A stretch of DNA of 64,000 nt, from sequence record NC_031245.1. One strand, 5' to 3'. The translations under genes were made by a program, and so were the position numbers. Below, piece by piece: positions 5,356-25,941 of this stretch (positions are counted from its first letter, which is position 1; the number at the start of each line of letters is the position of its first letter). The notes beneath the pieces were generated by a model. It saw only the letters and a program-made list of their open reading frames with translations, was not told the DNA's origin and did no database searches.

Positions 5356-5378
5356 TTACATCATGAGGAGTGGAACTT

Positions 5379-6810: not shown

Positions 6811-7503
6811 ATGGCAACTAGATACTGTAAAAGATGCAACAAAGAGTTAAAACCTACCCAAAAGAAGTACTGCAGTAACTCGTGCAGTGCTAAGGATCGA
6901 GTTATAAGTAAAGAAACTCGTGAGAAAATGAATCAATCAAAAAGAGGTAAGAAGGCTAGTGCTGAAACTCGTGCCAAAATGAGTAGATCTAGAAAAGGTA
7001 AGCCTAAGAGTGATAAACATAAAGCTAGTATAGCTGAAGCTCTTAAAGGTAATACTAACGGTACTGGCAAGAAGGGTATCAAGTTAAGTAAAGAGTCCAG
7101 GTTGCGGATTAGTAAAGCTATCAGCGGAGAAAATCATCCTATGTATGGTAAGTCTCTTAAAGAATCTACCAAGAAGAAATTGAGTGAGGCTAATAGAAGA
7201 AGAGAGAATGATATTGACTTCTACTTCAAGACACTGTTTACAAGTCCATATACTCCTCAGTATCGAATTGATGCACTTAAACACTATGGTCATGTATGTG
7301 AGAATTGCGGAGTGACAGACGTTATCCTAGAGGTTCATCATTTGGATCATGATAGAAGTAATAACGATATCAGTAATCTCTGCGTATTGTGCAGGATATG
7401 TCATCATAAAATTGCACATAAATACGGTAAAATCAAGATTAACACTCAATTTATCAGTCGCATAATTAATAAAAGGGGAGAGATAAACCATGCAAGTACG
7501 TAA
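6811..7503 (+). CDS. free-standing HNH homing endonuclease with NUMOD3-type repeats
   Basis: N-terminal CxxC..YCSxxC, basic repeats (SAETRAKMS, ENHPMYGKS), HNH core CENC..EVHHLDHDRSNNDISNLCVLCRICH. Confidence 0.9.
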   Translation: MATRYCKRCNKELKPTQKKYCSNSCSAKDRVISKETREKMNQSKRGKKASAETRAKMSRSRKGKPKSDKHKASIAEALKGNTNGTGKKGIKLSKESRLRISKAISGENHPMYGKSLKESTKKKLSEANRRRENDIDFYFKTLFTSPYTPQYRIDALKHYGHVCENCGVTDVILEVHHLDHDRSNNDISNLCVLCRICHHKIAHKYGKIKINTQFISRIINKRGEINHAST

Positions 7504-8374: not shown

Positions 8375-8378
8375 ATTT

Positions 8379-9563
8379 ATGAGGATATTGGTCACTATGC
8401 CAACCACTCATCATATGATTCCTACGCATCCTAGAGGTGGATTTGAAATTTCAGTAGCTCAAAGTGCTATTGCATTAAAAGAACTTGGACATGAAGTGAC
8501 GATTCTAGTTAACAAAGAAGGGTCGTTCACTCCTCCAGGGATAAAGCATTTGCAGTTCGGGAGGTCAATTAGAATACCTCCTAAGATATTCAAAGAGAAA
8601 TTCCTGGAGGACTACGATGTCATAGTTCATCATGCAGGAGTTCCTACGTACGAGAAAGACTCGTACCTCAAGTGGATCAATGACAAGAATCACCGACCTA
8701 AGAAACCATTCATCATAGTCTTTCATGATCCTCATATGTTAAGAGGGGATTCAAGTAAACCAAATAGTATGGAGAACTTTGACTCACCTCTTAATGAATT
8801 CAGACATATGGCTAACAGAGGATTAATAGTTGGAGGAGTAAGTAAGTCGCATACACAATGGATGGCTCAGTCCAAAGAATTAGGTTCAAATATGATGTAC
8901 CTCTATAATCCTACACTGGATTATGGATGGTCGGATCGAATAGTGACTAAACCTCGTCGTCTCATCATCGTTAGTCGGTATGCTACGTACAAGAACCTTA
9001 AAGTTTCAGTTAAAGCTGCAGGTGAGAGTGGTATACCAACTGACGTAATTATTAGTGGTATCTACGAGTCAGATAACGAATACCGTAATACTCCAGATAG
9101 AGAAGAGTCAACTAAGTCCTTCGAACTAAAGGTATTACCGTTATTTCGTAAGTATCCTAACTTGACATTGTATACTAATAAAACTAATCAATTTGTAATC
9201 GATAAGATGAAACATGCTGATTTGATGATATCTGCAAGTACAGGCGAATCCTTCGGTAGAATTTATGCCGAATCACTGTCAGTAGGTACTCCTCTACTAG
9301 TACCTGATTTCGAGATTAGTCGGGAGATCATCCGAGATTGTGGTGAATACTTTACATTCAGTGGTTCACGCAAATCAATGGTGAAAGAAATCCTGACCAA
9401 AATTGAATCAGCTTCATCTATCCCTAGAGACCGATGTCGTGAGTTATGGCACAACAATTATTCTCCAGTAAAAGTCGGACTAGCCTATGAAGAAGTAATA
9501 AATGCTTCAATCAATAATTGGGATAAAGGAGGAGTACTCCATGACATTTATAGTAACGTTTAG
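8379..9563 (+). CDS. GT4-like glycosyltransferase (GT-B fold)
   Basis: GGFE..LKELGHEVTIL N-terminus; ESFGRIYAESLSVGTP (EX7E motif). Confidence 0.88.
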   Translation: MRILVTMPTTHHMIPTHPRGGFEISVAQSAIALKELGHEVTILVNKEGSFTPPGIKHLQFGRSIRIPPKIFKEKFLEDYDVIVHHAGVPTYEKDSYLKWINDKNHRPKKPFIIVFHDPHMLRGDSSKPNSMENFDSPLNEFRHMANRGLIVGGVSKSHTQWMAQSKELGSNMMYLYNPTLDYGWSDRIVTKPRRLIIVSRYATYKNLKVSVKAAGESGIPTDVIISGIYESDNEYRNTPDREESTKSFELKVLPLFRKYPNLTLYTNKTNQFVIDKMKHADLMISASTGESFGRIYAESLSVGTPLLVPDFEISREIIRDCGEYFTFSGSRKSMVKEILTKIESASSIPRDRCRELWHNNYSPVKVGLAYEEVINASINNWDKGGVLHDIYSNV

Positions 9564-10092
9564 TTTGCTCATTCTTATCGTAGTTACACTTTATCTTCTA
9601 AGCAAGAATCGTAAATTGAATCAAATGGTATCACTGGATCATTTGACTAACACCTATAACAGACGATACCTCAATAAGTATAGAAAATATAAGGATCAAC
9701 TTCTCAGCGTACTCGTAATCGATATAGATCATTTCAAGTCGGTCAATGATACCTATGGTCATCCTGCTGGAGATCAGATACTATCTGAACTGGCTGGATT
9801 GTTGAAGAGAATAGTGAGAGAAGAGGACTCAGTAGTTCGAATAGGTGGCGAAGAATTCTTGGTGATTCTTAAGAATACCCCTATCGACATTGCTGAGTCC
9901 CTTGCCGTCCAAATTCTACACGCTATCGGTAACCATAGATTCACTTATAACGACAAAGAGATTAGGATTACTGTTAGTATAGGTGTATCAGAGTCCTACA
10001 CTGATATCGATAGAGCAATCAGTGAAGCAGACCTCAATCTGTACCACGCTAAAGAGTCTGGTAGAAATCAAATCAGAGTACACTGTAATTGA
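9541..10092 (+). CDS. membrane-anchored diguanylate cyclase (GGDEF domain)
   Basis: N-terminal TM helix; DHLTNTYNRR, DIDHFKSVNDTYGHPAGD, RxxD I-site (REED), GGEEF, LYHAKESGRN; ATG 9541 after AAGGAGGAG. Confidence 0.95.
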   Translation: MTFIVTFSLLILIVVTLYLLSKNRKLNQMVSLDHLTNTYNRRYLNKYRKYKDQLLSVLVIDIDHFKSVNDTYGHPAGDQILSELAGLLKRIVREEDSVVRIGGEEFLVILKNTPIDIAESLAVQILHAIGNHRFTYNDKEIRITVSIGVSESYTDIDRAISEADLNLYHAKESGRNQIRVHCN

Positions 10093-10110
10093 AGTTCTCA
10101 AACGTCTATA
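10082..10110 (+). promoter_or_regulatory. phage-specific bipartite promoter motif
   Basis: ACTGTAAT-N10-AAACGTCTATA-CTTG-TGAAG. Confidence 0.75.
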
Positions 10111-10141
10111 CTTGTGAAGACATCGAAGGAGGATTACTAAT

Positions 10142-11209
10142 ATGGGAATTTATTACGTAGCTCGACATAAGTACCATGTGGATGCGATGTATCCTATTTG
10201 GGAAGGTACTGGTGGAGAGTGGATATTTGTACATCGAGAAGTTCACGGTTATAAAGGACTGGAACATTCTAAGAAGAAGTTCTCCGATCTTACTGAAAAG
10301 GATCTGGTAATAGCTAACTGTCCACTGCCTGAAGCATCCTCAGCTAAGTACAAGTTTGTCAGATTAGAGCTAATGCAACATAGTCCAGGTCAACGTACTA
10401 ATATGCGTGAACGTAAATGCGGTATGATTGATTACGGAATTGTGACAACTGACTCTAACTGGGACTTGGACTACGATCTATCACCTACGTACAAGCGTAT
10501 GCGTGATGAAGGTCGTATCTTCCAAGCAGGTGCGTGGTTCAAGAAGTACTACCTTGATAGAATGGAATCCAAGTCTGATGGCAATACAATTCTCCTAGCT
10601 CCAGCTTCATCAAATACTGCAGGAGGATTCTTGAATGTAGTTGGTGAACAAATTATTGAGAAGTTGTTATCTGAAGGGTACAAAGTCATCCTGATGCCTC
10701 ATGAACTTGACGTCTATAACTTACCTGGACGTGGAGTAATCGAGAGACTACGAGAAAGAATGGCTAATGGTGAACTCGAAGGACTAGAGCTACTAGACAG
10801 CAAGAATACTGGTATCGATAAGATCGAATATGCATTCACTAAATCCGATATATGTATCTCGGACTTCTCAGGTACGTCTTATGAGTTTGCGTATCTAAAT
10901 AAACCAGTTATCCATTTAAAGAATACATCAAAAGATAGGTGGAATCCTAAGTATAAACATGGTAACTACCACCATACAGTAGGTCCACTTGTGGATTTCG
11001 AGAAATGTAACTTCCTACCTACAGTTCAGTTTGCTATGACTGCTCCTGAAGAATTTATCCAAGTATCTAATGAAGAGTGGGATAGATTAGAAGCACTTCA
11101 CGATACAGTAGGATTAAGGGAAGTGGATCCGATCACACCTTCAATCAAGATTATCTTAGACTGCTATGACAGATTGCAACAAGGTAATCTACCTAAGAAG
11201 GATTATTAA
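10142..11209 (+). CDS. TagF-like (CDP-glycerol glycerophosphotransferase family) phosphotransferase
   Basis: TILLAPAS, VILMPHE, SDICISDFSGTSYEFAYLNKPVI match family motifs ILYAPTWR / LHP / DILITDYSS..FD..LxKP. Confidence 0.75.
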   Translation: MGIYYVARHKYHVDAMYPIWEGTGGEWIFVHREVHGYKGLEHSKKKFSDLTEKDLVIANCPLPEASSAKYKFVRLELMQHSPGQRTNMRERKCGMIDYGIVTTDSNWDLDYDLSPTYKRMRDEGRIFQAGAWFKKYYLDRMESKSDGNTILLAPASSNTAGGFLNVVGEQIIEKLLSEGYKVILMPHELDVYNLPGRGVIERLRERMANGELEGLELLDSKNTGIDKIEYAFTKSDICISDFSGTSYEFAYLNKPVIHLKNTSKDRWNPKYKHGNYHHTVGPLVDFEKCNFLPTVQFAMTAPEEFIQVSNEEWDRLEALHDTVGLREVDPITPSIKIILDCYDRLQQGNLPKKDY

Positions 11210-11215
11210 TTAGAA

Positions 11216-11244
11216 GCTGTATTAAGGTGTCATAGACGTTTATA
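11216..11244 (+). promoter_or_regulatory. phage-specific bipartite promoter motif
   Basis: GCTGTATT-N10-AGACGTTTATA. Confidence 0.8.
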
Positions 11245-11276
11245 GTCTTGAGGTTGTTAAACGAAGGAGGATACTT

Positions 11277-12428
11277 ATGAAAGTCGGAATTATCAACAAT
11301 ATGAATGTTCCAAAAGGTGGAACAGCTACTTATTTCAGAAACTATTTAATCCCATTGCTACTACATGCTGGAGCAGAGGTGACTTTCATTTCTTACAAGG
11401 GACTAGGGGATTACTGGAACGATAAACTTCCAGAAGACGTCAAAGTCCTGAACGTTAGTCATGAAAACTTTGATGAGCACATCGCTGAATTAAATGGATT
11501 AGACGTTATCCACACTGTAATCTTCCATTCTTATGTTGGTAAGAAAGGTGAACATATTGAACTATGGGACGATTTAACTAAGTTAAATGTACCTTTAGTA
11601 ACAACTGTCCATGCAGTTACACAATTAATGAGATGGTCTCATGACCCATCGGTACTAAACACTAAATCATTCTTAGCTCACCCTAACTTAGCTAAAGTTA
11701 TTCAGTTCCGTTATGGATATTACGACTTGCTGATGGGTAAATTTGCTAAGAAATATAAACCTGAATTCAAGTTACCTAACCGTGAGGATTACATAGTACA
11801 TCATCCATACGTAGGGTACGTGGATCGTAGTAACTTAATCCCTTGGGAAGAACGTCCAAATAACATTAGTTATGCAGGTAGATTCTCTGGAGCTAAACGA
11901 GGATACGTACTAATGGATTCATACGAATACATTAAGTCATTCGACAAAATGGTAGTTGCTACAAACTACGACGACTGTTCGCACTGGGATCGTATGAAAC
12001 TCAATACACTTATTGAGCAAGTAGGTGACAAGCTTGACTTGATCAAGGAGTTCGAACCTACTGATGTTCCTAAAATTGCTAATAAGGCTAAGTTCGTAGC
12101 ATTCCCAGTAGCTTGGGAAGATATTGAATTCCCTAACGAATGGATGTACCAAGAAATGGTATCATGCGGAGTGATTCCTATCACTACGGATAAGATGATC
12201 AAGCGTGTACCTGATGAGCTTAAGGACGTACTCGTATTAACTCACGCTCCTACAACTAAGCCAGTTGACTATGACGCTATCGTAGGTCAGTATTCTCAAG
12301 AGCAATTAAAAGAGATGTCTGATAAATTAGTGGACTATGCTAATCGCAACTGGCATGATATCGACTTAGCTTCTAAGCACCTAGTTGGTGTTTACGAACA
12401 AGCTATTGATAAAGGAGTGACCAAATAA
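11277..12428 (+). CDS. GT-B glycosyltransferase, phage DNA alpha-glucosyltransferase-like
   Basis: MKVGII..GGTATY, SYAGRFSGAKRG, EWMYQEMVSCGVIPI. Confidence 0.65.
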   Translation: MKVGIINNMNVPKGGTATYFRNYLIPLLLHAGAEVTFISYKGLGDYWNDKLPEDVKVLNVSHENFDEHIAELNGLDVIHTVIFHSYVGKKGEHIELWDDLTKLNVPLVTTVHAVTQLMRWSHDPSVLNTKSFLAHPNLAKVIQFRYGYYDLLMGKFAKKYKPEFKLPNREDYIVHHPYVGYVDRSNLIPWEERPNNISYAGRFSGAKRGYVLMDSYEYIKSFDKMVVATNYDDCSHWDRMKLNTLIEQVGDKLDLIKEFEPTDVPKIANKAKFVAFPVAWEDIEFPNEWMYQEMVSCGVIPITTDKMIKRVPDELKDVLVLTHAPTTKPVDYDAIVGQYSQEQLKEMSDKLVDYANRNWHDIDLASKHLVGVYEQAIDKGVTK

Positions 12429-13570
12429 TGAGAATCGGATTCTTAACTTTCCATAATGATTACTCTTCCAACAAAGTTGGAGGAGTAGTTTCTGGACCAC
12501 TTTACATGGTACAGAACTTACGTCAAGTAATTGGTGCTGAAGTAGACTTCTTAGTAGTTGCAGATTCTACTAAGAGAGGGAAAATAAGAAATAAAGCATA
12601 TGAGGAAGATGTTAGTTCATTCCTCGGATTCTTTGAAGGTACTAAGGATCACGAATCTGACGTAGAGCTACTCAATTCTTACGACCTACTCATGTTCATG
12701 ACTCCAGGTAAAACGTATGAGAAGTTCAAAGAAGAGAAAGTAGGTCAGTATAAGAAGGTTCTTGATAAGCTAACAGTTCCATTTGGATTCATAGTTAATG
12801 AAGAACGTGACCGTGATATGTATCTGTATTATACAGAGTTCACGGATCATCCTGGATGCAAGTACATTCTTTACAATTCTGAAGATATGGCTAAGGATTT
12901 CGAGGACTTCAATCAAGGTGGTAAGGTGGTAGCTGAGTTCCAGTTTATGACTCCACTCGAACCTCTAAATAAGATTCTTGAGAAAGCTAGCAATAAAACT
13001 TCCTCAGTAATCAATACAGGTCGTTGGGTTAATCGTAAGCGTATCGTGGAGTACGTAGAGCTTGCTCCTAAGTTCGCTGAAGTAGGAATTCAACCTTACT
13101 TAGCAGGAGCTAAACAGAATCCATTCTACTCTAAACAAGTAGACGAGATGCTAGAAACTCAGTACTTCCAAGATAAAACTTACCAAGATTACTTAACTTA
13201 TGTAGGAGCCTACAAACCTACTAAAGAAGAATTGGATGGACTGCTTGATGATAAGATGTTCCATTACAATTTCGTATTCCTACGTACTAAACGCAAGATG
13301 TATAATCGACTTGAGATAGCTACGATGGAAGCATTCAATAGAGGATGTCTACCAATCGTATGTTCAGAGACTTCACCTGACTGGGTTGAAGGAGCATTGA
13401 GCTTAAGTCGGGATCAACTCGAAGAGATTCCTTCTATAGTAGCAGGTATCTCCGATGCAGAAAGAATTGATAGACTTACTATATTCTACAAGTCTATTCG
13501 AGATAACGTCGAAGCTAAGTATAAAGATATCTTTAATAACTTGTTCGAGAGCTTAGGTATTAATAAATAA
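12428..13570 (+). CDS. GT-B glycosyltransferase, T4 AGT-like
   Basis: LLNSYDLLMF, YKKVLDKL, TGRWVNRK, RLEIATMEAFNRGCLPIV parallel T4 AGT motifs as recalled. Confidence 0.65.
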   Translation: MRIGFLTFHNDYSSNKVGGVVSGPLYMVQNLRQVIGAEVDFLVVADSTKRGKIRNKAYEEDVSSFLGFFEGTKDHESDVELLNSYDLLMFMTPGKTYEKFKEEKVGQYKKVLDKLTVPFGFIVNEERDRDMYLYYTEFTDHPGCKYILYNSEDMAKDFEDFNQGGKVVAEFQFMTPLEPLNKILEKASNKTSSVINTGRWVNRKRIVEYVELAPKFAEVGIQPYLAGAKQNPFYSKQVDEMLETQYFQDKTYQDYLTYVGAYKPTKEELDGLLDDKMFHYNFVFLRTKRKMYNRLEIATMEAFNRGCLPIVCSETSPDWVEGALSLSRDQLEEIPSIVAGISDAERIDRLTIFYKSIRDNVEAKYKDIFNNLFESLGINK

Positions 13571-13574
13571 GGGT

Positions 13575-13976
13575 GTGACTCAATTGACCAGACTATCAAG
13601 AAATAACAGCGAGACACGAGAAATGATCAAGTCCTTGTCAACATTGACAGGACTTGACCCTAAGGCTATTGAAACTGTATTAGTTGCACAAGAATTATAC
13701 ATTCAGCATCAGGTGTATTTGAAATACAAAGCTAATCCTGAAGAACCACCTGAGATTGAATTGCCTTACTTGGGGTCACTCAAGATGTTCCCAATCAATT
13801 ATAAGAACCGTAGTGATGTAACAGACAATGCTGCTGCAAGAGTAAAGTTCTACCCTGAGAATCAATTTAAGCGTAGGTTACGTAAATCGATGTATCAGGA
13901 GAAGAACTTCTTGATAGAGCATTCACTCGAATCCTTCAAGGATCATTTTGTCCAGAAATTCAAATCACTCATTTAA
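13575..13976 (+). CDS. HU/IHF-like DNA-binding protein
   Basis: MIKSLSTLTGLDPKAIETVL..EIELPYLGSLK pattern. Confidence 0.55.
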   Translation: MTQLTRLSRNNSETREMIKSLSTLTGLDPKAIETVLVAQELYIQHQVYLKYKANPEEPPEIELPYLGSLKMFPINYKNRSDVTDNAAARVKFYPENQFKRRLRKSMYQEKNFLIEHSLESFKDHFVQKFKSLI

Positions 13977-13989
13977 GGAGCTATCGTTT

Positions 13990-15420
13990 ATGTCTATAGT
14001 TAGAATGTATGATATACGAGGTATTTATGGTAAGGAGTTAACTGATGACTACGCCTATAACTTAGGTATTCGCCTAGTTAACTACCTTAATTCTGTATCA
14101 CAAAGTCCGACACTAGAAGTATTAGTTGGGTACGATGCACGTCGCAGTAGTCCAGCTCTGCATGATAAATTGGTAGAAGCTATTAGTAAGGCAGGAGCTA
14201 ACGTAGTCTCTGTAGGTATGACTACATCAGGAGTTATCTCTACTCTTGATAAAATGGAGAAACCTGACGCTTCGGTTATGATTACTGCTAGCCATAATCC
14301 TCCTGAATATAATGGATTTAAGATAATTGTTAATGGTCAAGCTCTCTATGGAGACCTATTAGCAGAAGTTGCTAATTACTCAGATATAGTTTTCTCAGGA
14401 GTAGATAGAGGATCAATCGGTAGCTACCCTGAGCTCATCAATAACTTGTACGTACCTGCTATCGTACGTGAATTCAAAAATAGACAGTCTGAAATCGATA
14501 TAATCAATACTTTGGAGTTAGCTATTGACTGTGCTAACGGCTCTGCAGGACCAGTACTTCAAGATGTACTCGACCGACTGGGTCTCAATATAGAGCTTAC
14601 CCTTAAGGAACCTGACGGGTCATTTCCAGTTCATCCACCAGATCCTAGTAAAGAGGATAACTGGGTTCATATTAAATCCCATTACCTAGATACTAAAATG
14701 CTGTTCATGATTGATGGTGATGGTGATCGTGTAGGTGTCATGACTAATGAAGGGACTTTGCTAAAAGGAGATAAAGTACTTTCTATCATAGCTGAGGCAA
14801 GCTCCTCACGTGCAATGGACAATACGATTCTCCTTGATGTTAAGTCCTCCGAGCTAGTTCGTGAGCATATTAAGTCATTAGGCTATCGTGTTAGGTACCA
14901 TCAAACAGGTCATTCCTTGATCAAGAAGTCAATGAATGGTGACAAATTGATAGCAATGGCTGGAGAAGAGTCAGGTCATCTCTATATTAGAGATGAGTTC
15001 TTTGGAGTGGATGATGCAGTCTATAACCTCCTAAGATTCCTATTTGATTCAGTTAAGTTAGGTGCTCATGCTAATCTGGAGTCCTACCTAAACTCAAGGA
15101 TGCCACGAACTTATACTCTTAGTCTTAAGTTTAATGTTTCAGATAACTTAAAGCCTAAGGTAATGGAGAGAGTTGCTCAAAAGGTAGTAGACTACGCTGA
15201 AAGTCTAGCAGGTGAAGTTATAACGATTGATGGAGTTAGAGCTAACTTCCATGAAGGGTGGTTCATCTTACGTCAATCAAATACCGAACCTTATATTGGA
15301 GCTAACATTGAGACTTATGAAGAGGATAAACTAGGTGATATCCGAAAGGTTCTATCAGATCTAGTAACTGAAGCTATTGCCAAGGAGGAAGAATTAAGTG
15401 GTCCAGTTAAATCCAAGTAA
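13990..15420 (+). CDS. phosphoglucomutase/phosphomannomutase
   Basis: YDIRG, ITASHNPPEYNGFK phosphoserine loop, DGDGDR metal loop, GEESGH, FILRQSNTEP; ATG 13990. Confidence 0.95.
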   Translation: MSIVRMYDIRGIYGKELTDDYAYNLGIRLVNYLNSVSQSPTLEVLVGYDARRSSPALHDKLVEAISKAGANVVSVGMTTSGVISTLDKMEKPDASVMITASHNPPEYNGFKIIVNGQALYGDLLAEVANYSDIVFSGVDRGSIGSYPELINNLYVPAIVREFKNRQSEIDIINTLELAIDCANGSAGPVLQDVLDRLGLNIELTLKEPDGSFPVHPPDPSKEDNWVHIKSHYLDTKMLFMIDGDGDRVGVMTNEGTLLKGDKVLSIIAEASSSRAMDNTILLDVKSSELVREHIKSLGYRVRYHQTGHSLIKKSMNGDKLIAMAGEESGHLYIRDEFFGVDDAVYNLLRFLFDSVKLGAHANLESYLNSRMPRTYTLSLKFNVSDNLKPKVMERVAQKVVDYAESLAGEVITIDGVRANFHEGWFILRQSNTEPYIGANIETYEEDKLGDIRKVLSDLVTEAIAKEEELSGPVKSK

Positions 15421-15712
15421 TTTTAATGAAGTTGTTGAGTCAGGGAAAGTCCTAGCAGTAAAATTCGGAGCACCATGGTGCGGTACTTGTAAGTCACTTG
15501 AAGCTCAATTAGATCAAATCATCGAGTCTGATAAGTACCAAGTTGCTGAAGTAAATGTAGAAGAGTCTGCAGATATTGCTGCTCAATACGGAATTATGAG
15601 TATTCCAGCATTACTATTTTTCAAGGATGGTCAGAAAGTGGATGAAGCATCCTTCGTAGGATTTCGTCCAGCTGAGTACATTCAGGAGACTCTTGACTCT
15701 CTATCCAAGTAA
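15398..15712 (+). CDS. trxA: thioredoxin
   Basis: FGAPWCGTCK, YGIMSIPALLFFKDG. Confidence 0.92.
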   Translation: MVQLNPSNFNEVVESGKVLAVKFGAPWCGTCKSLEAQLDQIIESDKYQVAEVNVEESADIAAQYGIMSIPALLFFKDGQKVDEASFVGFRPAEYIQETLDSLSK

Positions 15713-15717
15713 GCCAG

Positions 15718-15754
15718 ATGACCTAGGTAATTATACCTAGGTCATTTTTATTTT
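15718..15754 (+). terminator. intrinsic terminator
   Basis: 12-bp stem ATGACCTAGGTA/TACCTAGGTCAT then TTTTATTTT. Confidence 0.85.
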
Positions 15755-15756
15755 AA

Positions 15757-15785
15757 GCTCGAATCAACCTCCTCGAACGTTTATA
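15757..15785 (+). promoter_or_regulatory. phage-specific bipartite promoter motif
   Basis: GCTCGAAT-N10-GAACGTTTATA. Confidence 0.8.
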
Positions 15786-15844
15786 TTGTTGAGGTGGTGA
15801 TCGAGTTGATCTACATTGAGAAACGTTAAATATGTTGGAGGTAG

Positions 15845-15873
15845 GCTCTAATTAACGAGTTGAAACGTTTATA
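15845..15873 (+). promoter_or_regulatory. phage-specific bipartite promoter motif
   Basis: GCTCTAAT-N10-AAACGTTTATA. Confidence 0.8.
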
Positions 15874-15927
15874 CTGGTGAATGGTGTTGAAGCGTATGAC
15901 ACGTTCGATCAGAACGGAGGGATTGTG

Positions 15928-16635
15928 TTGAGTCGAGTTGGGTACATCTATAAAATAAGCAACAGTGTAGACTCAATGGTGTATATTGGAAGTACAGTGA
16001 AAGATGTAGAGACAAGAATGTACAAAGGAGCTTATTGCCATGCGGGATTAGCTCGTAGAGGTGATAAAAGACCTCTCTATATAGCTATGAGAAATTTAGG
16101 TATTGACAATTTCAAAATCGAGGTATTAGAGGAATTTGAATATGAAGATCCTAAAGAACTTAGAGCTAGAGAGCGAGACATCATTCAGGAGTATGTGGAT
16201 AAATTAGGAGCAGGTAAACTGTATAACATTTACAAAGAGGGATTTACTCTAGGATTCCATACAGAAGAATCACGTAGGAAGTGCAAGGAAGCCATTAATA
16301 CTCCTGAAGTTTTAGATAAGATCAAGAATACACAGTATAGGAGGTACGGATCTTACGGATTTCATACAGCTAAGTCAATTAAAAAGATGAGGATGTCCAA
16401 ATCTTGGTTTGTAGAATATGAAGGTCAAATCTTCATAGGACTTAGACCTCTAGAGTCGTACCTAAAAGATCAAGGGTACGTATGTTCTCGTAAGACCCTT
16501 ACCAATATAATTAATAATAGAGTGGATAAGCTGACTCCTCGACATCGAGGCATGATCGGTAAAGTTCGAATACTTACTGAGCAGGAGAAACTCGACTATA
16601 TTGAGAAGTTAGAGAAGGAGAGTGGTAATGCATGA
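15928..16635 (+). CDS. free-standing GIY-YIG homing endonuclease
   Basis: GYIYKI..VYIGST, GIDNFKIEVLE, catalytic-type R and E; TTG 15928 after GGAGG. Confidence 0.88.
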   Translation: MSRVGYIYKISNSVDSMVYIGSTVKDVETRMYKGAYCHAGLARRGDKRPLYIAMRNLGIDNFKIEVLEEFEYEDPKELRARERDIIQEYVDKLGAGKLYNIYKEGFTLGFHTEESRRKCKEAINTPEVLDKIKNTQYRRYGSYGFHTAKSIKKMRMSKSWFVEYEGQIFIGLRPLESYLKDQGYVCSRKTLTNIINNRVDKLTPRHRGMIGKVRILTEQEKLDYIEKLEKESGNA

Positions 16636-18668: not shown

Positions 18669-18685
18669 ATTTACCTCCCTTCTTG

Positions 18686-18714
18686 GCTCGATTCAAGTTC
18701 AAAGAACGTCTATA
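18686..18714 (+). promoter_or_regulatory. phage-specific bipartite promoter motif
   Basis: GCTCGATT-N10-GAACGTCTATA. Confidence 0.8.
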
Positions 18715-18802
18715 TCTTTAAGGAGGTGATATGCCCATAGAATGTTAATGGTGCTTTGTGCACGTAATGATACTCAAGTAGCTCCAAGGGAGGAGACTAA
18801 AG

Positions 18803-19066
18803 ATGTTCAACTGGGATATTACTACAGGCTATGTAATCCTTGGGATCATAGGTGGTGCGGTTATAGTATCTAGTTTCATAGATCGGGTACTTATCCGCAA
18901 TGGACGTGAGGCATATGTGCCAGTAGTTAATCGAATACTCAAATTAGGTGTAATTGGAGTATGTGGTTATGTAGGTCTAAGTTTTCTAAACTTAGTATCT
19001 GATATGACTGGATTGTCTTTACCTTACGTCAAAGAAGTTCTTAGATTCATCCATGGTTTAGTCTAA
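18803..19066 (+). CDS. small two-TM membrane protein
   Basis: two hydrophobic segments; GGGAGGAG RBS. Confidence 0.8.
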   Translation: MFNWDITTGYVILGIIGGAVIVSSFIDRVLIRNGREAYVPVVNRILKLGVIGVCGYVGLSFLNLVSDMTGLSLPYVKEVLRFIHGLV

Positions 19067-19171
19067 AATCATACCAAGGACACTTATACCAGTGATCGCA
19101 ATTTAACTGTACCAGTGTACGACGTACGTCCTTGATCACCTAAGTTCAATCAATCGGGAGGTTAGAGGAGT

Positions 19172-20806
19172 ATGTTACTGGAAGGTGGATTACTAGCTGC
19201 TGGACTTAGTATTTGGGGTCTCTACAAATACGAAACTAATCCGTCCACTCAATTTAAACGTAAGCTCAACGATGCTATGAATCGTGCAGGATTACGATTT
19301 AAATTCAAAAATAAATCTGGTCATGAAGTAATTGAGAGACCAGTGCTACTATCTATAGAGCCGAGTGAATATGGATGGAAAACACAGTTCCGATTACCAG
19401 TAGGGATGGTTCCTGATGATATTGTCGAAGCTAAGGCAGTTCTTGAAGGAGCAATCAACGCAGAGTTGGATCTAGATTATGAAGGACAATTGATCACAAT
19501 TAACTTCTATACTCATCCAATTCCAGAACCTGGTAGTGAGGCAGCTATGTATAGTAAATCGTTAGTAGAGCAAGTCCAGAAATATCCCTTAGGAATACCT
19601 ATAGGTCATAGTAAAGTAGGATTTATCGTTCATGACCTATCTGAAGGCTCTGCACCACATCTATTAGTAGGTGGTCAGACTGGTATGGGTAAAAGTAATA
19701 TTCTGAATTTGATTATTACTACCCTAATCAAAGCCTATTCGAAAGACCATGTTCACATCCACTTGATTGATACTAAGATGGTGGAGTTCTTTAAGTTCAA
19801 GAATTTAGATCATGTACGTTCCTGCTCGATAGACATCAGTGATGGTGTAAAGTCTGTAACTAATATTCAACGTGAATTGAGAGAACGTCAGAAACTCTTA
19901 ATGACATCGGGATATAGTAACATCCTTGATTATAATCGCGATAGCGATGAATCCGAGAAGTTACCTTTCATCGTACTCATTGTTGATGAATTTGGTGATT
20001 TCCAAGGAGTAAGTGACTTTTGGAAACCTGTTGATGAGTTAGGACGTAAAGGAAGAGCGATGGGTATTCATGTCATACTGTCAACTCAAAGACCTGATGC
20101 TCAGACGCTACCTCCTAAAGTCAAAGCTAACTTAGCAGGAGTTGTTTGTCTAAAGACTAAAACTAAATCAAACTCCCAAATCCTACTTGATTCAACTAGG
20201 GCATTTAAGTTACCACTCAAGAAAGGTCGAGCTTTATTTCAGCTCGATGGATTGAGAGAGGTACAAATTCCTTATATTGAGGAAAAGGTATTGGAGGAAC
20301 AACTTGGTATCTTAATCAATAAAAGGTTCAGAAAAAGGAATGGCGAAGTGGTCATCCTTGATCCTAGCGAACGTGACTACGATAGAGATGTCGTAAATGT
20401 CACTCCTAATCCTGAAAGTGATACTGAATACCTTAATAGTGCATCACTCTTGGGTATATCTGGCTCAGCTGAGTCACATCAAGATTTAACAGCTAATAAA
20501 GTTCAGCGAAAATCACTACCTAATCCTGAGTCTTCTAAGTCGGAGCGTAGTAACTACATCGATACCGTTAAGGAAATCGAGAAGTTAGAAGCTCAAGCAT
20601 TCAAATACAATGAAGAGATGAACGATTTAGGTAGAGAATTATACGAGTTACATTCCAAGTATATTAGTGAAACCAATAGTCGGATTAAGTCACAGTTATC
20701 CAAGTCAGGGTTAGAGGTCAAAGAGAAATATGAGAATCTACAGAAACATCGTGATGATCTTCTCTTGAAGTCCACTCAACTCAGAAAGACGTTAGGTAAG
20801 AAATAA
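19172..20806 (+). CDS. FtsK/SpoIIIE-family ATPase
   Basis: N-terminal TM, PHLLVGGQTGMGKS Walker A, LIDTK..EF, LIVDEF Walker B, GRAMGIHVILSTQRP. Confidence 0.93.
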   Translation: MLLEGGLLAAGLSIWGLYKYETNPSTQFKRKLNDAMNRAGLRFKFKNKSGHEVIERPVLLSIEPSEYGWKTQFRLPVGMVPDDIVEAKAVLEGAINAELDLDYEGQLITINFYTHPIPEPGSEAAMYSKSLVEQVQKYPLGIPIGHSKVGFIVHDLSEGSAPHLLVGGQTGMGKSNILNLIITTLIKAYSKDHVHIHLIDTKMVEFFKFKNLDHVRSCSIDISDGVKSVTNIQRELRERQKLLMTSGYSNILDYNRDSDESEKLPFIVLIVDEFGDFQGVSDFWKPVDELGRKGRAMGIHVILSTQRPDAQTLPPKVKANLAGVVCLKTKTKSNSQILLDSTRAFKLPLKKGRALFQLDGLREVQIPYIEEKVLEEQLGILINKRFRKRNGEVVILDPSERDYDRDVVNVTPNPESDTEYLNSASLLGISGSAESHQDLTANKVQRKSLPNPESSKSERSNYIDTVKEIEKLEAQAFKYNEEMNDLGRELYELHSKYISETNSRIKSQLSKSGLEVKEKYENLQKHRDDLLLKSTQLRKTLGKK

Positions 20807-20807
20807 T

Positions 20808-21269
20808 ATGGAAAATCGTAGAAGCTTACCTACTTGCATAGAAATACTTTGGGGAGGAAAATCCACGATCTTGAATCAGAATGATAATTTGAGGAGAGTG
20901 TGGTTATCCATGAAAACAATAGTCCAAACAATTGATAAAGATGCAATCGTAGATAAAATGTTCAATGAGCTAAAGCAGGAATTTGGCAATGAAGGTATCG
21001 GAATCCTATTCCCTAATTTATCTCAGTCTGAACAAGCATCCAGTGCTGTAGAAATCTACGATACAGAAGCTATTGAGTCAGTAGATACTGCTCAAGAAGG
21101 TATGCGACTTCTTCTGAACGAAGGAGAGGTTACTATATCCAATCCTGTAGAGACGGAGAAACTCAGTCGTATACTTCGTACTCTCAATGTTGATCACATC
21201 AAATTAAGTAATTCCGATGAAGATTACGCATTGTTCGTACTTCAAGAGGATGTATCTAAACTAGTGTAA
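20808..21269 (+). CDS. hypothetical protein
   Basis: ORF track; true start may be downstream. Confidence 0.7.
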   Translation: MENRRSLPTCIEILWGGKSTILNQNDNLRRVWLSMKTIVQTIDKDAIVDKMFNELKQEFGNEGIGILFPNLSQSEQASSAVEIYDTEAIESVDTAQEGMRLLLNEGEVTISNPVETEKLSRILRTLNVDHIKLSNSDEDYALFVLQEDVSKLV

Positions 21270-21311
21270 TTTGGAGGTGAGTAGGCTAGAGTTCTGCTCT
21301 AGCCTATTTAT

Positions 21312-21710
21312 ATGATAATTGGTATACATAAGCAACCTAGATTGCCTGAATCCGAAGCAGGTTTTAAGATTGTAGCAGGAGACACCTTAGAAGATGTGTA
21401 TAAGTCCATAATCCAACAACTAAGACTAGAAGATGGTCAAGATGGGGATATGACTACTATCACCTTCTCTAACGGAACTCAAGTAATAGTCCGTAGGGAA
21501 GTATCATGGGATAATCCAGAGGACTTAGAAGATGATGACGCACCTGATGAATTCTCAGAATTTGACGAAGAGCTAGGTAGTGAGCACGACTTCGTTGATG
21601 TATTCGTAGAAACTCCAGAGATCCGATTCAGAGAAATTAGTTCTACTAATTTGTCTGTAGAAGAATTGATCCCTATATTCACTAGAACAATTTACAGATA
21701 TGAGGAGTGA
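21312..21710 (+). CDS. acidic hypothetical protein
   Basis: ORF track. Confidence 0.75.
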   Translation: MIIGIHKQPRLPESEAGFKIVAGDTLEDVYKSIIQQLRLEDGQDGDMTTITFSNGTQVIVRREVSWDNPEDLEDDDAPDEFSEFDEELGSEHDFVDVFVETPEIRFREISSTNLSVEELIPIFTRTIYRYEE

Positions 21711-21716
21711 TTCTCG

Positions 21717-21962
21717 ATGCATTTAACAGAACAAGAAGTGGAAGCAATAGTTAAGTCTACTCCAGGAGTGGATACTGTTCGAATTGAACAGCAACCTTCA
21801 ATCGTCTATATCCATACCAATCTGAAGTGGTGGGCACCTAAACTATTGGATGCTAGAAAGATATTCCTCCATTTGAATTATATTTTGGAGGTACGTAAAG
21901 TTGTTGGAATTCAGGTTGCTATACGTCTATACTCTTGGAGAGGTAAACTTCTTGAAGAGTAG
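21717..21962 (+). CDS. hypothetical protein
   Basis: ORF track; GAGGAG RBS. Confidence 0.75.
   Translation: MHLTEQEVEAIVKSTPGVDTVRIEQQPSIVYIHTNLKWWAPKLLDARKIFLHLNYILEVRKVVGIQVAIRLYSWRGKLLEE
21903..21931 (+). promoter_or_regulatory. phage-specific promoter motif (intragenic)
   Basis: GTTGGAAT-N10-ATACGTCTATA-CTCT-TGGAG, inside 21717..21962. Confidence 0.6.
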
Positions 21963-22014
21963 GAGTTCTCCGCTAATCAGTATATAGAAGATTATAATAG
22001 GTGGAGTTGATCTT

Positions 22015-22548
22015 ATGACACTAGCTAGTGAGCTAAAGGGTTTGGTAAACAAGAAATTATTAGGAGTCGGGAATGATGGGACTATGTACTTTGAAGGAGG
22101 GACTGCAGTAATCCCTCATCAATACGAAACTTATGTTGAAGGTTACAGTCCTAAAGGACTCGACAAAAAGAAGATTAAATTTTACAGTACTAAATTGTTC
22201 GAGGAAGAAGAGATCCGTATTCAAGTATTTCAAACCAGTGAAGGTATCTCAGTCTATACTCATGTAGAAAATTCTCTGGCTCAAATAGATACTACTTGGT
22301 GTTCAGAAGAAGTTTATAGCATTAAGGGATTGTACATCAATCGGATTATAGTTCCTAAGAAGATAGGTAACCGAGGAATAGCGACTAAGCTTATCCAGAA
22401 ATTGATAGAAGTCAGTGAAACTAATTTACTCCTAGAAATCAATGCATACGGAGATGTTAGTGAGAAGAAACTCAGAGAATTCTATCTAAAATTTGGATTC
22501 GAACCTGCTAAAGATCTTCCAGGATTGTACGTAAGATTAGCTAAATAA
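22015..22548 (+). CDS. GNAT-family N-acetyltransferase (C-terminal domain)
   Basis: INRIIVPKKIGNRGIATKLI acetyl-CoA motif A; LREFYLKFGF. Confidence 0.8.
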   Translation: MTLASELKGLVNKKLLGVGNDGTMYFEGGTAVIPHQYETYVEGYSPKGLDKKKIKFYSTKLFEEEEIRIQVFQTSEGISVYTHVENSLAQIDTTWCSEEVYSIKGLYINRIIVPKKIGNRGIATKLIQKLIEVSETNLLLEINAYGDVSEKKLREFYLKFGFEPAKDLPGLYVRLAK

Positions 22549-22570
22549 AGAATATGGGGAGAGGAGTTAG

Positions 22571-22891
22571 ATGAGTAGTCCCGAAGTCCGTAACTTGATA
22601 GTCGGGATCTACGGTAGAATCGCTCACAACTTAGTAATGTACAGGATTACCGATAGACACGATTATCTTAATGAATTTCTATCACATGCTGCTAAGATAT
22701 TGGTTCAGTCCAATTTACCTGATGAAATCATTGGAGAGATAATCAACAAAGCAATGGAACAGTCCGACCTCGAGTACAAAATGTATTTGGAAGGAGTCGC
22801 CATAAGAAGCTTTGGAGGCAGTGAAGTCACTGCTGAATCCTTAATAGGTTTTCATTGTGAGAGACTACTAGAACTTCTAGCTAAAGACTAA
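22571..22891 (+). CDS. hypothetical protein
   Basis: ORF track; GAGGAG RBS. Confidence 0.75.
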   Translation: MSSPEVRNLIVGIYGRIAHNLVMYRITDRHDYLNEFLSHAAKILVQSNLPDEIIGEIINKAMEQSDLEYKMYLEGVAIRSFGGSEVTAESLIGFHCERLLELLAKD

Positions 22892-22898
22892 TTTTATT

Positions 22899-23114
22899 AT
22901 GAAAAACTTGACATCTAAGAAATGCAAATCATGCGATAAGGAATTTCCATTGGAAGTATTCTCCATACGTAAATCAGCACAGGATGGTCGAGGTAATACT
23001 TGCCCATCCTGCAAGGATGAATGGAGAAGTGGACATACTAGGAGGTCATCAAGAAATGCCAGAAATTATCGAAGCTCAAATGTTAGTAGACGGACTACAG
23101 CAAGTAGTCGGTAG
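22899..23114 (+). CDS. small Zn-ribbon protein (HNH N-terminus-like)
   Basis: KKCKSCDKEFPLEVF..QDGRGNTCPSCK. Confidence 0.6.
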   Translation: MKNLTSKKCKSCDKEFPLEVFSIRKSAQDGRGNTCPSCKDEWRSGHTRRSSRNARNYRSSNVSRRTTASSR

Positions 23115-23913
23115 AACTATTACTAAGGTAGAAAAGTTGGATACTAATAACATAATCAATAATGAGGACGAATTCAAAGAATTCGTAGAAGGCAGTACTA
23201 TTACTGTAGTGTTCCGAGTAGGTAAGAGACCTTGTCTTGTATTAAATAAAGGAGGTGAGAATCAAGATAATCCTGATATGTTAGGCGAAAGTCGAGTTGT
23301 AGATATATTCTTATCCATGGCTGGAGCATTAATGATAGATAAAGAACATAAGAACTCCCGAGTTAAGTTTACCCTGGATAACGGTCAAGTAATCTACTAT
23401 GTGGATGGTCGCAAATGGGGTAGGATGACGTTGAGGACATCAGAACAATGGGAGAAGAAATTTAAGACTTCAGCAGTTGATGCTCTTAAAGCTAGCGATG
23501 AAGAACTCGCCAAGCGACTACTTGAAGTCAAGGATAAGGATAGATCAATGAAAGCCATATTAATGGATCAAGGTATTATAATAGGTCTTGGAAATGTGTA
23601 TGCTCAGGAAGCACTGCACGATGCAGGTATTCATCCTCAGAGATTATTAAAAGATGTAAGTCCTACTGAATTAGATAAGTTAGGTACAGAAATTAAAGTA
23701 ATGCTTGAAGAGTCCTACAAACTCGGAGGACTTAGTATGAAAGACTATTTGCACGTTGACGGATCACTAGGTGAAGCGTTCAATATCACTAAAGTCTATC
23801 GTAAGAAGAAGTGTGGAACTTGTGGGGGTCGAGTTGATAAGATACGACAAGGTGGTCGTTCAACTTATTACTGTTCTAAATGTCAACCGATGGAGGTAAT
23901 GACTAATGCCTAG
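23056..23913 (+). CDS. mutM: formamidopyrimidine-DNA glycosylase (Fpg/Nei)
   Basis: N-terminal MPE at 23056 after GGAGG; DGRKWG, H2TH LMDQGIIIGLGNVYAQEAL, Zn finger CGTCGG..RSTYYCSKCQ. Confidence 0.93.
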   Translation: MPEIIEAQMLVDGLQQVVGRTITKVEKLDTNNIINNEDEFKEFVEGSTITVVFRVGKRPCLVLNKGGENQDNPDMLGESRVVDIFLSMAGALMIDKEHKNSRVKFTLDNGQVIYYVDGRKWGRMTLRTSEQWEKKFKTSAVDALKASDEELAKRLLEVKDKDRSMKAILMDQGIIIGLGNVYAQEALHDAGIHPQRLLKDVSPTELDKLGTEIKVMLEESYKLGGLSMKDYLHVDGSLGEAFNITKVYRKKKCGTCGGRVDKIRQGGRSTYYCSKCQPMEVMTNA

Positions 23914-24364
23914 GTATGATTATAAATACGTAGAGGAAGAAATGAAGTACTATGATGGTCCAGTAATCTTGAAGCTAGAAGGATTTAAGTACGAAACTCA
24001 TAGGAGTGAAAGACTACCTGCAGACTTCCTTAATATCTTATGTGATAACGGATGGGAGCTTGTGGACGTACGTTACCGACTATTCAGAAAAGAATTACCT
24101 GAAGCTGAAGAGATATACGACGACGAGTACTCAAAAGAGTCCTACGATATTCGTAGCTACGTCCCTAGTGCAGGATTCCTATTAATGGAACAGTCCTACG
24201 TTGACAAGATAAAGATGTTCAATAGTCAGATCCACGATGTTGAAAAGGATATGGCTAATTCGAGTCGAACGAGCTACCAATTGTTAGAAACTTATCGGAA
24301 TGAGTTAGTTAAACTAAGGGATCAACTCGAGCATAAGCTTGAAACTAGGTACAGAAATAAATAG
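23906..24364 (+). CDS. hypothetical protein
   Basis: ORF track; GGAGG RBS. Confidence 0.75.
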   Translation: MPRYDYKYVEEEMKYYDGPVILKLEGFKYETHRSERLPADFLNILCDNGWELVDVRYRLFRKELPEAEEIYDDEYSKESYDIRSYVPSAGFLLMEQSYVDKIKMFNSQIHDVEKDMANSSRTSYQLLETYRNELVKLRDQLEHKLETRYRNK

Positions 24365-24381
24365 GAGAGGAAGACATCCAG

Positions 24382-24747
24382 ATGCCAGCACCATTAGACA
24401 TCCAATTAGTCAAGTTTATCAAAGCTAACAAAATCCACAAGTACTACCAGCATTATAAAACTAAAGGTTATTACAAAATCAAAAGTCTATCATTTCATAC
24501 TGAGGAAGTAGACTCTCAAGGTCATCCAGCCATTATGGTTAACTATGTTGATCAGTATGGAGTTAGGTGGACTAGACCTTACGATATGTTCTTCTCTACA
24601 GTGGAACATGATCTTAATGAAGCAGTAGCTCAATCTTCAGCTACTGGAGTTTCTCTGAATGATCTGCTTGCAGTGCAAACACCTAGATTCAAAAAGGTAA
24701 GTGCTAAAGAGTACTACCTTTCCAAGCTAAAATCAAAAACTGCTTAA
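24382..24747 (+). CDS. DUF1653-like protein
   Basis: YQHYKTKGYY..HTEE..VNY..WTRPYDMF. Confidence 0.7.
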   Translation: MPAPLDIQLVKFIKANKIHKYYQHYKTKGYYKIKSLSFHTEEVDSQGHPAIMVNYVDQYGVRWTRPYDMFFSTVEHDLNEAVAQSSATGVSLNDLLAVQTPRFKKVSAKEYYLSKLKSKTA

Positions 24748-24760
24748 GGAGGATTCGATT

Positions 24761-25114
24761 ATGGAGAAGAATAGAAGAGATGCATTTAGACTGGAGAACT
24801 TACAGATTTCTTGTAAGTACGGCAACTGTGCTGAAGGAATTACTAACCTAGTAGACATCAGTGCAACTGGTGCTAGACTAGCTGGCAAGATAGGTGATGT
24901 AGGGAGTCCAATAACTATAACTTTCAGAATTATGGATAAAGCATTCATTAGAACTGGAACTATAGTTTGGGTGGATAATCAGTACACTGCAATGAAATTC
25001 TCTAAGACTACTCCTAGAGAAGAATCCGAACTGCTACGTAATATCTTCCAAGAAGATATCAAAAGGAAGTATGAGTCAGAAAATAATCAAGAAAAGTTAG
25101 CTCAAAACGAGTAA
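24761..25114 (+). CDS. stand-alone PilZ-domain c-di-GMP receptor
   Basis: RDAFR (RxxxR) and DISATG (DxSxxG) followed by a beta-barrel pattern (GTIVWV..AMKF). Confidence 0.85.
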   Translation: MEKNRRDAFRLENLQISCKYGNCAEGITNLVDISATGARLAGKIGDVGSPITITFRIMDKAFIRTGTIVWVDNQYTAMKFSKTTPREESELLRNIFQEDIKRKYESENNQEKLAQNE

Positions 25115-25917: not shown

Positions 25918-25941
25918 AGGACTCCTTCGGGAGTCCTTATT
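25918..25941 (+). terminator. terminator-like hairpin with UUCG tetraloop
   Basis: AGGACTCC-TTCG-GGAGTCCT-TATT. Confidence 0.65.

Follow-up and report, generated by a model that had tools for sequence, protein, structure and literature searches.

Bacillus phage SP-15 encodes a diguanylate cyclase and a PilZ protein that may act as coupled writer and reader of cyclic di-GMP

In Bacillus subtilis, diguanylate cyclases and their receptors act in pairs by direct contact local to the membrane (PMC7064775). Once bound to cyclic di-GMP (c-di-GMP), the receptor MotI disengages MotA, and ComFB in complex with the same nucleotide also blocks motility (PMC7064775, PMC12265714). Lytic Pseudomonas phages raise the c-di-GMP of their host, and motility falls (PMC8085984). 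Here, we analyzed a 64-kb window (the whole stretch of DNA under study, 64,000 nucleotides of record NC_031245.1 from Bacillus phage SP-15), which encodes both a GGDEF-family diguanylate cyclase, gp150, and a PilZ protein, gp170, so that a single virus might supply a writer and a reader of c-di-GMP.

Literature searches for phage-encoded cyclases, GGDEF or PilZ proteins returned only the studies of YIP peptides, by which host YfiN is switched on, and of PlzR, a phage protein that binds host PilZ, and neither phage cyclases nor PilZ proteins are treated in a survey of 224 jumbo phages. The 2018 genome paper of SP-15 names the cyclase only in one figure legend (Figure 5) and never mentions PilZ or c-di-GMP (PMC5977210), and no paper discussing the pair was found in our literature search. 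The original prediction, made from the sequence of the window, had stated that no such paired module was described in a phage. This holds for the literature found, where the pair is undiscussed, but not for the genes themselves, as both were already annotated, gp150 in GenBank as "diguanylate cyclase" and gp170 as "hypothetical protein; Pfam PilZ", and the cyclase is coloured in Figure 5. Both features exist at the coordinates given and far exceed chance expectation, and the interpretation placed on them is supported in part. The components are ordinary members of known families, annotated beforehand. What is new is their viral pairing, the cyclase as a lineage-specific operon insert, a phage-only DUF1653/PilZ-like cassette, and a ligand pocket kept only beside the cyclase.

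Comparison of two stretches of the window with the SP-15 genome (KT624200.1 / NC_031245.1) gave 100% identity, the window corresponding to bases 124001-188000 of a record of 221,908 bp and 357 features classified in the genus Thornevirus. SP-15 is a lytic jumbo myovirus infecting B. subtilis W23 and B. licheniformis, in whose DNA about half of the thymine is replaced by 5-(4',5'-dihydroxypentyl)uracil bearing glucose and phosphoglucuronolactone (PMC5977210). The DNA is that of a phage, as had been proposed. A local tblastn search of every piece of the genome detected one GGDEF gene and one PilZ gene. Domain identity, motifs, the membrane helix, ribosome-binding sites, operon bounds, copy number, gene distribution and the link between motifs and cyclase were all computed. 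The two genes are as follows.

9541..10092, + strand: SP15_150 (gp150), diguanylate cyclase, 183 aa; transmembrane (TM)/stalk helix 2-31, GGDEF domain, GGEEF active site, RxxD inhibition site
24761..25114, + strand: SP15_170 (gp170), single-domain PilZ protein, 117 aa; RxxxR in a flexible N-terminus, barrel 16-80 with DxSxxG, C-terminal helix 86-116

A Shine-Dalgarno sequence, AAAGGAGG, sits 8 nt 5' of the gp150 ATG at 9541, supporting the annotated start rather than the ATG at 9502. The protein matched the Pfam GGDEF profile PF00990 with 130.7 bits (E 5.4e-38, cut-off 23.8) and TIGR00254 with 142.6 bits, and its best match among solved cyclases (PleD, WspR, DgcZ and others) reached an E-value of about 1.4e-25. 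The motifs of the family are easily identified: DHLT at 33, DIDHFKSVND (61-70), GHPAGD (73-78), the active site GGEEF (102-106) and AKESGRN (170-176), with D61, D63, K66, N69, D78, R100, K171 and R175 all in place. The inhibition site (I-site) REED (93-96) is followed by SVVRI and then by GGEEF, which places the RxxD exactly five residues ahead of the active site. In an alignment of 25 GGDEF sequences (gp150 and 24 of its closest homologues), gp150 keeps 24/24 invariant columns, and R93, D96 and Asp78 are invariant. By comparison with PleD and the Hypr enzymes, Asp78 is taken to be the guanine-specificity position. Hypr GGDEF proteins, which make cyclic GMP-AMP (cGAMP), carry Ser or Thr in place of this Asp, so that c-di-GMP rather than cGAMP is the favored product of gp150.

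Residues 2-20 form a hydrophobic helix (Kyte-Doolittle 2.65) directly followed by SKNRK, which, according to the positive-inside rule, places the catalytic domain in the cytoplasm. In the AlphaFold2 model (predicted local distance difference test score, pLDDT, 96.4), an unbroken helix 2-31 continues into the GGDEF fold, and since just 12 residues separate the membrane helix from the GGDEF domain, gp150 has no sensor domain. As modeled, this helix would resemble the stalk helices of other cyclases and the active GCN4-WspR fusion (3i5c). Profiles, motifs, alignment and model are therefore in agreement with the TM-anchored, sensorless GGEEF cyclase with all catalytic motifs and RxxD site that had been predicted at this locus. 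On these grounds, gp150 very probably synthesizes c-di-GMP.

The ATG of gp170 is preceded by AAGGAGG. The protein aligned with all positions of the Pfam PilZ profile PF07238 (1-102/102) at 31.4 bits (cut-off 22.5), and both ligand-binding motifs were found, with R5 and RDAFR (6-10) at the N-terminus and DISATG at 32-37. Both motifs occurred in correct order and spacing in only 78 of 100,000 composition-preserving shuffles, an arrangement therefore improbable by chance. The AlphaFold2 model (pLDDT 81.8) shows a disordered N-terminus (1-7), strands within residues 16-80 and a C-terminal helix (86-116). Searches of the Protein Data Bank (PDB) by sequence, with gp170 or with the family profile, gave nothing significant, and similarity to PilZ structures was seen by fold comparison alone: the 31 top Foldseek matches in the PDB were all PilZ domains (E 1e-5 to 8e-3). 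The best was B. subtilis MotI (5vx6, E 1.2e-5, TM-score 0.63), with PA0012, MapZ, Alg44, BcsA, PlzD, PlzA, MrkH and YcgR close behind.

The separate 117-aa PilZ protein with RxxxR and DxSxxG that had been noticed in the letters of the window is thus recovered by Pfam, motifs and fold, and, judging from these features, gp170 is likely to bind c-di-GMP. Its interpretation as a specific mimic of MotI was rejected, as the MotI match is no better than the other PilZ matches and the first domain of MotI is absent. Indeed, gp170 lacks the two-domain flagellar-brake architecture (PilZN/YcgR-N plus PilZ) and its alignments with MotI (209 residues; TM-score 0.38 when scaled to target length) and with YcgR (226 residues) are only partial. 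In PADLOC, no defense-related family was convincingly matched by gp170. It was matched by none of the eight GGDEF-containing PHROG families, all of which are of "unknown function". In the BFVD database, the sole other viral protein with a confident gp170-like PilZ fold was S5VYD7 (114 aa, E 1e-6).

A tblastn search of phage records led from gp170 to a single relative, encoded by Listeria phage LIS04 (OQ999172, 181.6 kb). When 1.84 billion representative proteins were scanned in full with HMMER, and a profile search was added, the family came to four members: SP-15, LIS04 and two metagenomic contigs (L015 and L017), both of which derive from SP-15-like phages with the gene order of SP-15. A word-indexed protein search retrieved only gp170 itself. 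In IMG/VR, queries with gp170 or the TagF-like protein, with a two-sequence alignment of either, and with a helicase alignment gave only SP-15 or helicases 20-31% identical, and two scans of JGI metagenomes gave no matches. The more distant B. cereus phage HSE3 has neither the cyclase nor the PilZ-like gene. Two genes of the window are needed for the comparison of these relatives.

24382..24747, + strand: gp169, DUF1653 protein, conserved upstream partner of the PilZ-like gene
8379..9563, + strand: gp149, glycosyltransferase of GT1/GT4 type (GT1), whose 3' end runs 23 nt into the cyclase gene

The gp170 family is phage-only, PilZ-like, and always encoded directly after a DUF1653 gene. This cassette was found in 4/4 phages, at 24382-25114 of the window, L002:5690-6294 in LIS04, L015:9631-10282 and L017:6617-7284, with overlapping start and stop of the two genes in LIS04 and L017. 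No function of DUF1653 was described in the literature found, which contained incidental mention only. In LIS04, the DUF1653 gene itself (L002:5690-5983) is unannotated, and the phage is filed as species "Thornevirus SP15" despite protein identities to SP-15 of 47-66%.

The four PilZ-like proteins differ at the positions of the two motifs.

SP-15 PilZ: RRDAFR at the RxxxR position, DISATG at the DxSxxG position
LIS04 PilZ-like: FAALFH at the RxxxR position, SISYNG at the DxSxxG position
L015 phage PilZ-like: KRFR at the RxxxR position, EITHNT at the DxSxxG position
L017 phage PilZ-like: ERSSNV at the RxxxR position, QLGNSS at the DxSxxG position

The ligand motifs are therefore intact in the SP-15 member alone (1/4). 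In-frame stops show that the relatives have no longer N-termini, and their three proteins fall below the Pfam PilZ cut-off, with 14.5 bits or no score. The SP-15 protein is 38-44% identical to each relative, compared with 26-31% among the relatives themselves. Three-point estimates of terminal branches gave 0.10 for the SP-15 PilZ against 0.65-0.89 for the others, a branch 6-9x shorter. The corresponding values were 0.18 against 0.23-0.39 for FtsK and 0.16 against 0.25-0.34 for Fpg (ratio 1.3-2.2), so that the short-branch contrast of SP-15 is 3-4x stronger for PilZ than for these two proteins.

LIS04 is syntenic to SP-15 throughout the region, with genes for ligase, single-stranded DNA-binding protein (SSB), UDP-glucose dehydrogenase, GalU, the TagF-like protein, a glycosyltransferase (GT), gp153, gp154, helicase, FtsK, three small genes, Fpg, DUF1653 and the PilZ-like protein. 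GT1 (gp149) and the cyclase are absent together, as one block, and an open reading frame (ORF) of 86 codons occupies the site. The 151 phage records with GGDEF matches do not include LIS04, which has no GGDEF gene anywhere. The co-occurrence of the two genes in related phages, proposed earlier as a check, is thus not simple: the cyclase is absent from LIS04 and no phage orthologue of it was found, and the PilZ-like gene is present in 4/4 phages, but the motifs are intact in SP-15 only. Taken with the branch lengths, such a distribution fits an ancestral ligand-binding adaptor, constrained in the cyclase-bearing SP-15, whose pocket was lost elsewhere. It argues for a link between cyclase and PilZ protein in SP-15, from one fully informative comparison.

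The cyclase has no clear source. Its best homologues share no more than 45% identity with it, those with names being mostly from Proteobacteria and not from Bacillus. In the homologue neighborhoods read, the genes were ordinary bacterial ones with no adjoining transferases, and no bacterial source of the GT-plus-cyclase block could be named among them. The one-helix architecture was found in none of the short homologues inspected. The GC content of the gp150 gene (0.380) equals that of the window (0.383), which marks it as a long-standing resident in which all catalytic residues were nonetheless kept. In Bacillus phage G, gp350 (L003:4635-5399; 254 aa) is a sensorless GGDEF protein with two helices and REED five residues before GGDEF, a genuine second case in a phage, which was probably acquired independently of gp150. 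Most other "phage" records bearing GGDEF look bacterial (Acinetobacter phage MD-2021a, Listeria phages LM 4-14-1 and 4-11-1, Salmonella whole-genome shotgun scaffolds), so that counts of phage cyclases are inflated by bacterial contigs filed as phage.

The surroundings of the two genes were delimited as follows.

4457-4478: terminator-like hairpin 5' of the cyclase unit
4942..15712, + strand: cyclase-bearing transcription unit, with genes for SSB, UDP-glucose dehydrogenase, HNH, GalU, GT1, cyclase, TagF-like, GT, gp153, gp154, phosphomannomutase and thioredoxin
15716..15747, + strand: intrinsic terminator closing the cyclase unit; the PilZ gene falls in the next unit
25918..25937, + strand: terminator-like hairpin ending the unit with helicase, FtsK, Fpg, DUF1653, PilZ and gp171

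The PilZ-bearing unit runs from a GIY-YIG endonuclease gene to gp171. In the cyclase unit, genes 146-155 have been assigned to DNA hypermodification (PMC5977210). The "glycosylation cluster" in which the cyclase had been said to be embedded is the operon to which the DNA hypermodification of SP-15 is ascribed, and not a surface-glycan locus. Within this unit, gp153 (12428-13570 of the window, "hypothetical") shows a weak match to the phage alpha-glucosyltransferase family phrog_2888 (E 1e-4), in agreement with the hypermodification role, and is 62% identical to its LIS04 homologue (L004:41254-42417, unannotated), which makes it a candidate DNA-sugar transferase of a pathway common to SP-15 and LIS04. 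Homing-type endonuclease genes lie in the operon (HNH, 6811-7503) and adjoin it (GIY-YIG, 15925-16635). Along with the phosphomannomutase and thioredoxin genes, they are missing from the equivalent places of LIS04.

From these elements, we infer the activity of gp150, its dimerization, the binding of ligand by gp170 and the timing. Sensorless and anchored by a single helix, gp150 would dimerize through this helix and be constitutively active once made, with product inhibition at the RxxD site as its sole brake. Because it is co-transcribed with replication and hypermodification genes, c-di-GMP is expected to rise from early or middle infection. The phage-made nucleotide would load gp170 at its intact RxxxR/DxSxxG pocket, while in the cyclase-less relatives the pocket-less adaptor would have to work without ligand. 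As c-di-GMP diffuses, host MotI (acting on MotA), ComFB and YdaK would be engaged as well, so that flagellar rotation would stop and matrix production would be favored, motility arrest through MotI and ComFB being the most concrete consequence predicted by the model, though not necessarily the selected one. We consider it slightly more likely than not that gp150 and gp170 are functionally coupled in SP-15. The full scheme, in which a constitutive writer loads the phage-family adaptor and host receptors are engaged as a side effect, is our best explanation and a tentative one.

A number of points weigh against the coupling. The two genes lie 14.7 kb from each other, belong to different transcription units and do not form an operon, and "circuit" is a generous term given that neither EAL nor HD-GYP is annotated in SP-15. 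Since the host makes its own c-di-GMP, gp170 could be supplied without gp150. Joint arrival of the cyclase and GT1 from a bacterial polysaccharide operon, the cyclase being a mere passenger, is also conceivable. For the association of the cyclase with intact motifs, LIS04 is the single fully informative relative, since the cyclase-site region of both metagenomic relatives lies outside the stretches read. ERR12380611_696 (69 kb) was read to 10 kb either side of the PilZ-like gene, and the contig surely reaches the sugar cluster. The search for GGDEF homologues gave no match from a contig of 69-kb size, which is weak evidence that the cyclase is absent from it. The SRR29716580 contig begins within the helicase gene and is thus uninformative on the cyclase site. 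Finally, the PilZ branch estimate comes from 80 columns only, and the rate contrast is partly a lineage effect, because the SP-15 branch is the shortest in 4/4 proteins compared.

The absence of an eraser was considered across the 357 annotated features of SP-15, among which no EAL or HD-GYP protein was named, Pfam having been run on a part of the ORFs. The three HD/phosphohydrolase candidates proved to be a YfbR-like nucleotidase, an OB-HD protein and a DHH/DHHA1 protein. The latter, SP15_099 (KT624200.1 95208-96131, outside the window; annotated "phosphohydrolase"), has 307 aa, combines DHH with DHHA1 and gives weak matches of RecJ type. This architecture includes nanoRNases degrading pGpG and c-di-AMP phosphodiesterases, and SP15_099 could be a candidate for the absent eraser or an unrelated nuclease. 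An Rfam scan of the 222-kb genome gave no family at gathering score, so that no GEMM-I or GEMM-II c-di-GMP riboswitch was found.

Among the alternatives, the one that survives best holds that the two proteins act independently: the cyclase would flood host MotI, ComFB and YdaK, causing motility arrest or a shift to sessility, and gp170 would sense host c-di-GMP without any link to gp150. The distance and separate units of the two genes are in line with this view, as is a PilZ-like family that is older than, or independent of, the cyclase in the SP-15 lineage. Moreover, phage G has a similar cyclase and no gp170 relative detectable by tblastn (no sensitive PilZ search was made), and the literature documents the host receptors and what they do, as well as the rise of c-di-GMP and the lowered motility caused by Pseudomonas phages. 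Independent action, however, leaves unexplained why the pocket survives only with the cyclase and why the SP-15 copy evolves slowly. In addition, Listeria and Bacillus hosts both make c-di-GMP, and a sensor of host state should have retained its pocket in LIS04. We therefore regard it as rather unlikely, if the least so of the alternatives.

Distinctly less probable is that the cyclase is a passenger or relic without a selected role, acquired along with GT1 from an operon for exopolysaccharide or teichuronic acid in a bacterium, and that the PilZ motifs are an uneroded ancestral state. The 23-nt overlap of GT1 and cyclase, their joint absence from LIS04, the failure to find a phage orthologue of the cyclase or a gp149 homologue in any other phage record, and the tolerance of jumbo genomes for extra genes are all compatible with a passenger, and the 2018 genome paper emphasized the bacterial origin of the cluster genes (PMC5977210). 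Yet a fully ameliorated gene has kept 24/24 invariant columns along with its I-site and strong ribosome site, and its bacterial homologues, at most 45% identical, are not beside transferases. As for gp170, the loss of the motifs in three comparably diverged relatives makes neutral retention in SP-15 alone unlikely.

The original prediction had also suggested that the cyclase controls the glycosylation cluster. In this scheme, local c-di-GMP would activate GT1 or another transferase of the hypermodification operon, as in cellulose, alginate and Pel synthesis. The position of the cyclase inside the operon, overlapping GT1 and gained or lost together with it, speaks for such control, c-di-GMP-activated glycosyltransferases are well known, and the PilZ domains of Alg44 and BcsA are among the fold matches of gp170. 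It is unlikely as a general function, as LIS04 retains the core sugar genes (UDP-glucose dehydrogenase, GalU, TagF-like, GT, gp153 and gp154) without the cyclase. A 2025 paper groups SP-15, LIS04, RP13, YerA41, Carin-5 and others by their SP-15-type thymidine modification. The genus names of these phages are largely absent from the GGDEF match list, indicating that the cyclase is not part of the modification pathway. GT1 and the cyclase thus form a lineage-specific insert, outside the conserved hypermodification pathway. Furthermore, no transferase of the operon has a PilZ or recognizable receptor domain, and the substrate is DNA or nucleotides and not a membrane-extruded polymer, whereas the cyclase is membrane-bound. 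Control of hypermodification is accordingly quite improbable.

Least credible is another product such as cGAMP, or an anti-defense role as decoy nucleotide or GTP drain with gp170 as nucleotide sponge: weak matches of gp150 to PADLOC Cas10 palm-domain models (E 5e-4) reflect a shared fold, and counter-nucleotide enzymes are many in jumbo phages (PMC7824862), with a DHH/DHHA1 phosphoesterase in SP-15 itself, but Asp78 and Asn69 occupy guanine-contacting positions, c-di-GMP dimers are the specific ligand of the RxxD site, the gp170 motifs are those of a c-di-GMP pocket, and gp170 has no convincing defense-family match.

With regard to the host, flagellum-dependent entry of SP-15, raised as a reason for immobilizing the cell, found no supporting text: SP-15 is unmentioned in two reviews of flagellotropic and Gram-positive phage adsorption, and the genome paper shows a baseplate with short spikes (PMC5977210). 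Some other features of the genome were recorded. SP15_064 (KT624200.1 56443-69648, outside the window; "pectate lyase") is a single gene of 4,401 codons that adjoins the baseplate genes; its product is probably a giant protein of the tail with a depolymerase or receptor-binding function. In the annotation, endonuclease ORFs interrupt the joined genes for the major capsid protein and the DNA polymerase, but Rfam gave no recognizable group I intron model there. In the window, positions 30001-32000, which hold a ferredoxin gene and small ORFs, have a GC content of 0.42 compared with 0.38 and a slightly negative GC skew.

Returning to the coupling of gp150 and gp170, a more speculative and somewhat doubtful extension is that of a virus-private circuit, in which the cyclase would serve as a clock of the infection stage and c-di-GMP would switch on the PilZ adaptor, with DUF1653, against a target conserved in Bacillus and Listeria, the relatives having hard-wired the adaptor and dropped the ligand. 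If this were true, SP-15 would be the first virus shown to have its own c-di-GMP writer and reader, and a receptor family would have been caught on either side of ligand dependence. It is known that phages break down the cyclic nucleotides of their hosts or sequester them, and that one group switches on a host cyclase; SP-15 would add the viral writing and reading of c-di-GMP. For Bacillus, the prediction is that infection raises c-di-GMP and engages MotI, ComFB and YdaK. The four-member PilZ-like family, with one pocket beside a cyclase and three members without, offers a natural contrast for the study of ligand-free single-domain PilZ adaptors, and the DUF1653/PilZ-like cassette a first functional handle on DUF1653.

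Compared with the described systems, SP-15 shares with the DgcK/DgcP/DgcW and MotI (DgrA) proteins of B. subtilis the combination of a GGDEF writer and a PilZ reader with RxxxR and (D/N)xSxxG, host signaling being membrane-local (PMC7064775). Unlike the B. subtilis cyclases, gp150 is sensorless with a single helix, and its closest homologues are non-Bacillus. Unlike MotI, which has two domains and 209 residues, gp170 has one domain of 117 aa; the two are 14% identical in structural alignment, and no specific kinship is indicated, the other PilZ matches having nearly the same E-values. The stand-alone PilZ adaptors (MapZ/PA4608 with CheR1, PA0012, 4xrn) are similar to gp170 in size and likewise combine a barrel and a C-terminal helix with a flexible arginine switch at the N-terminus and the two motifs. 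MapZ-type adaptors work through ligand-dependent partner binding; the gp170 family differs from them in being phage-only, with four members encoded after DUF1653, and in missing the pocket in 3/4. These three members, from LIS04, L015 and L017, rather resemble the ligand-independent PilZ of Pseudomonas aeruginosa, which binds PilB/FimX, in having neither RxxxR nor DxSxxG, whereas the SP-15 member keeps the pocket. A sequence relationship to Pseudomonas PilZ was not found. P. aeruginosa PilZ is itself the target of the phage protein PlzR (PMC11461919). Among phages, gp350 of the Bacillus jumbo phage G is, like gp150, a membrane-anchored, sensorless GGDEF protein with REED, but it has two helices and 254 aa, is 37% identical over the domain and lies in another genomic setting. 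Lastly, the YIP peptides of the Pseudomonas PB1-like phages, which activate host YfiN, likewise associate a lytic phage with a documented rise in host c-di-GMP and loss of motility (PMC8085984), whereas SP-15 supplies both the enzyme and the reader and needs no host cyclase.

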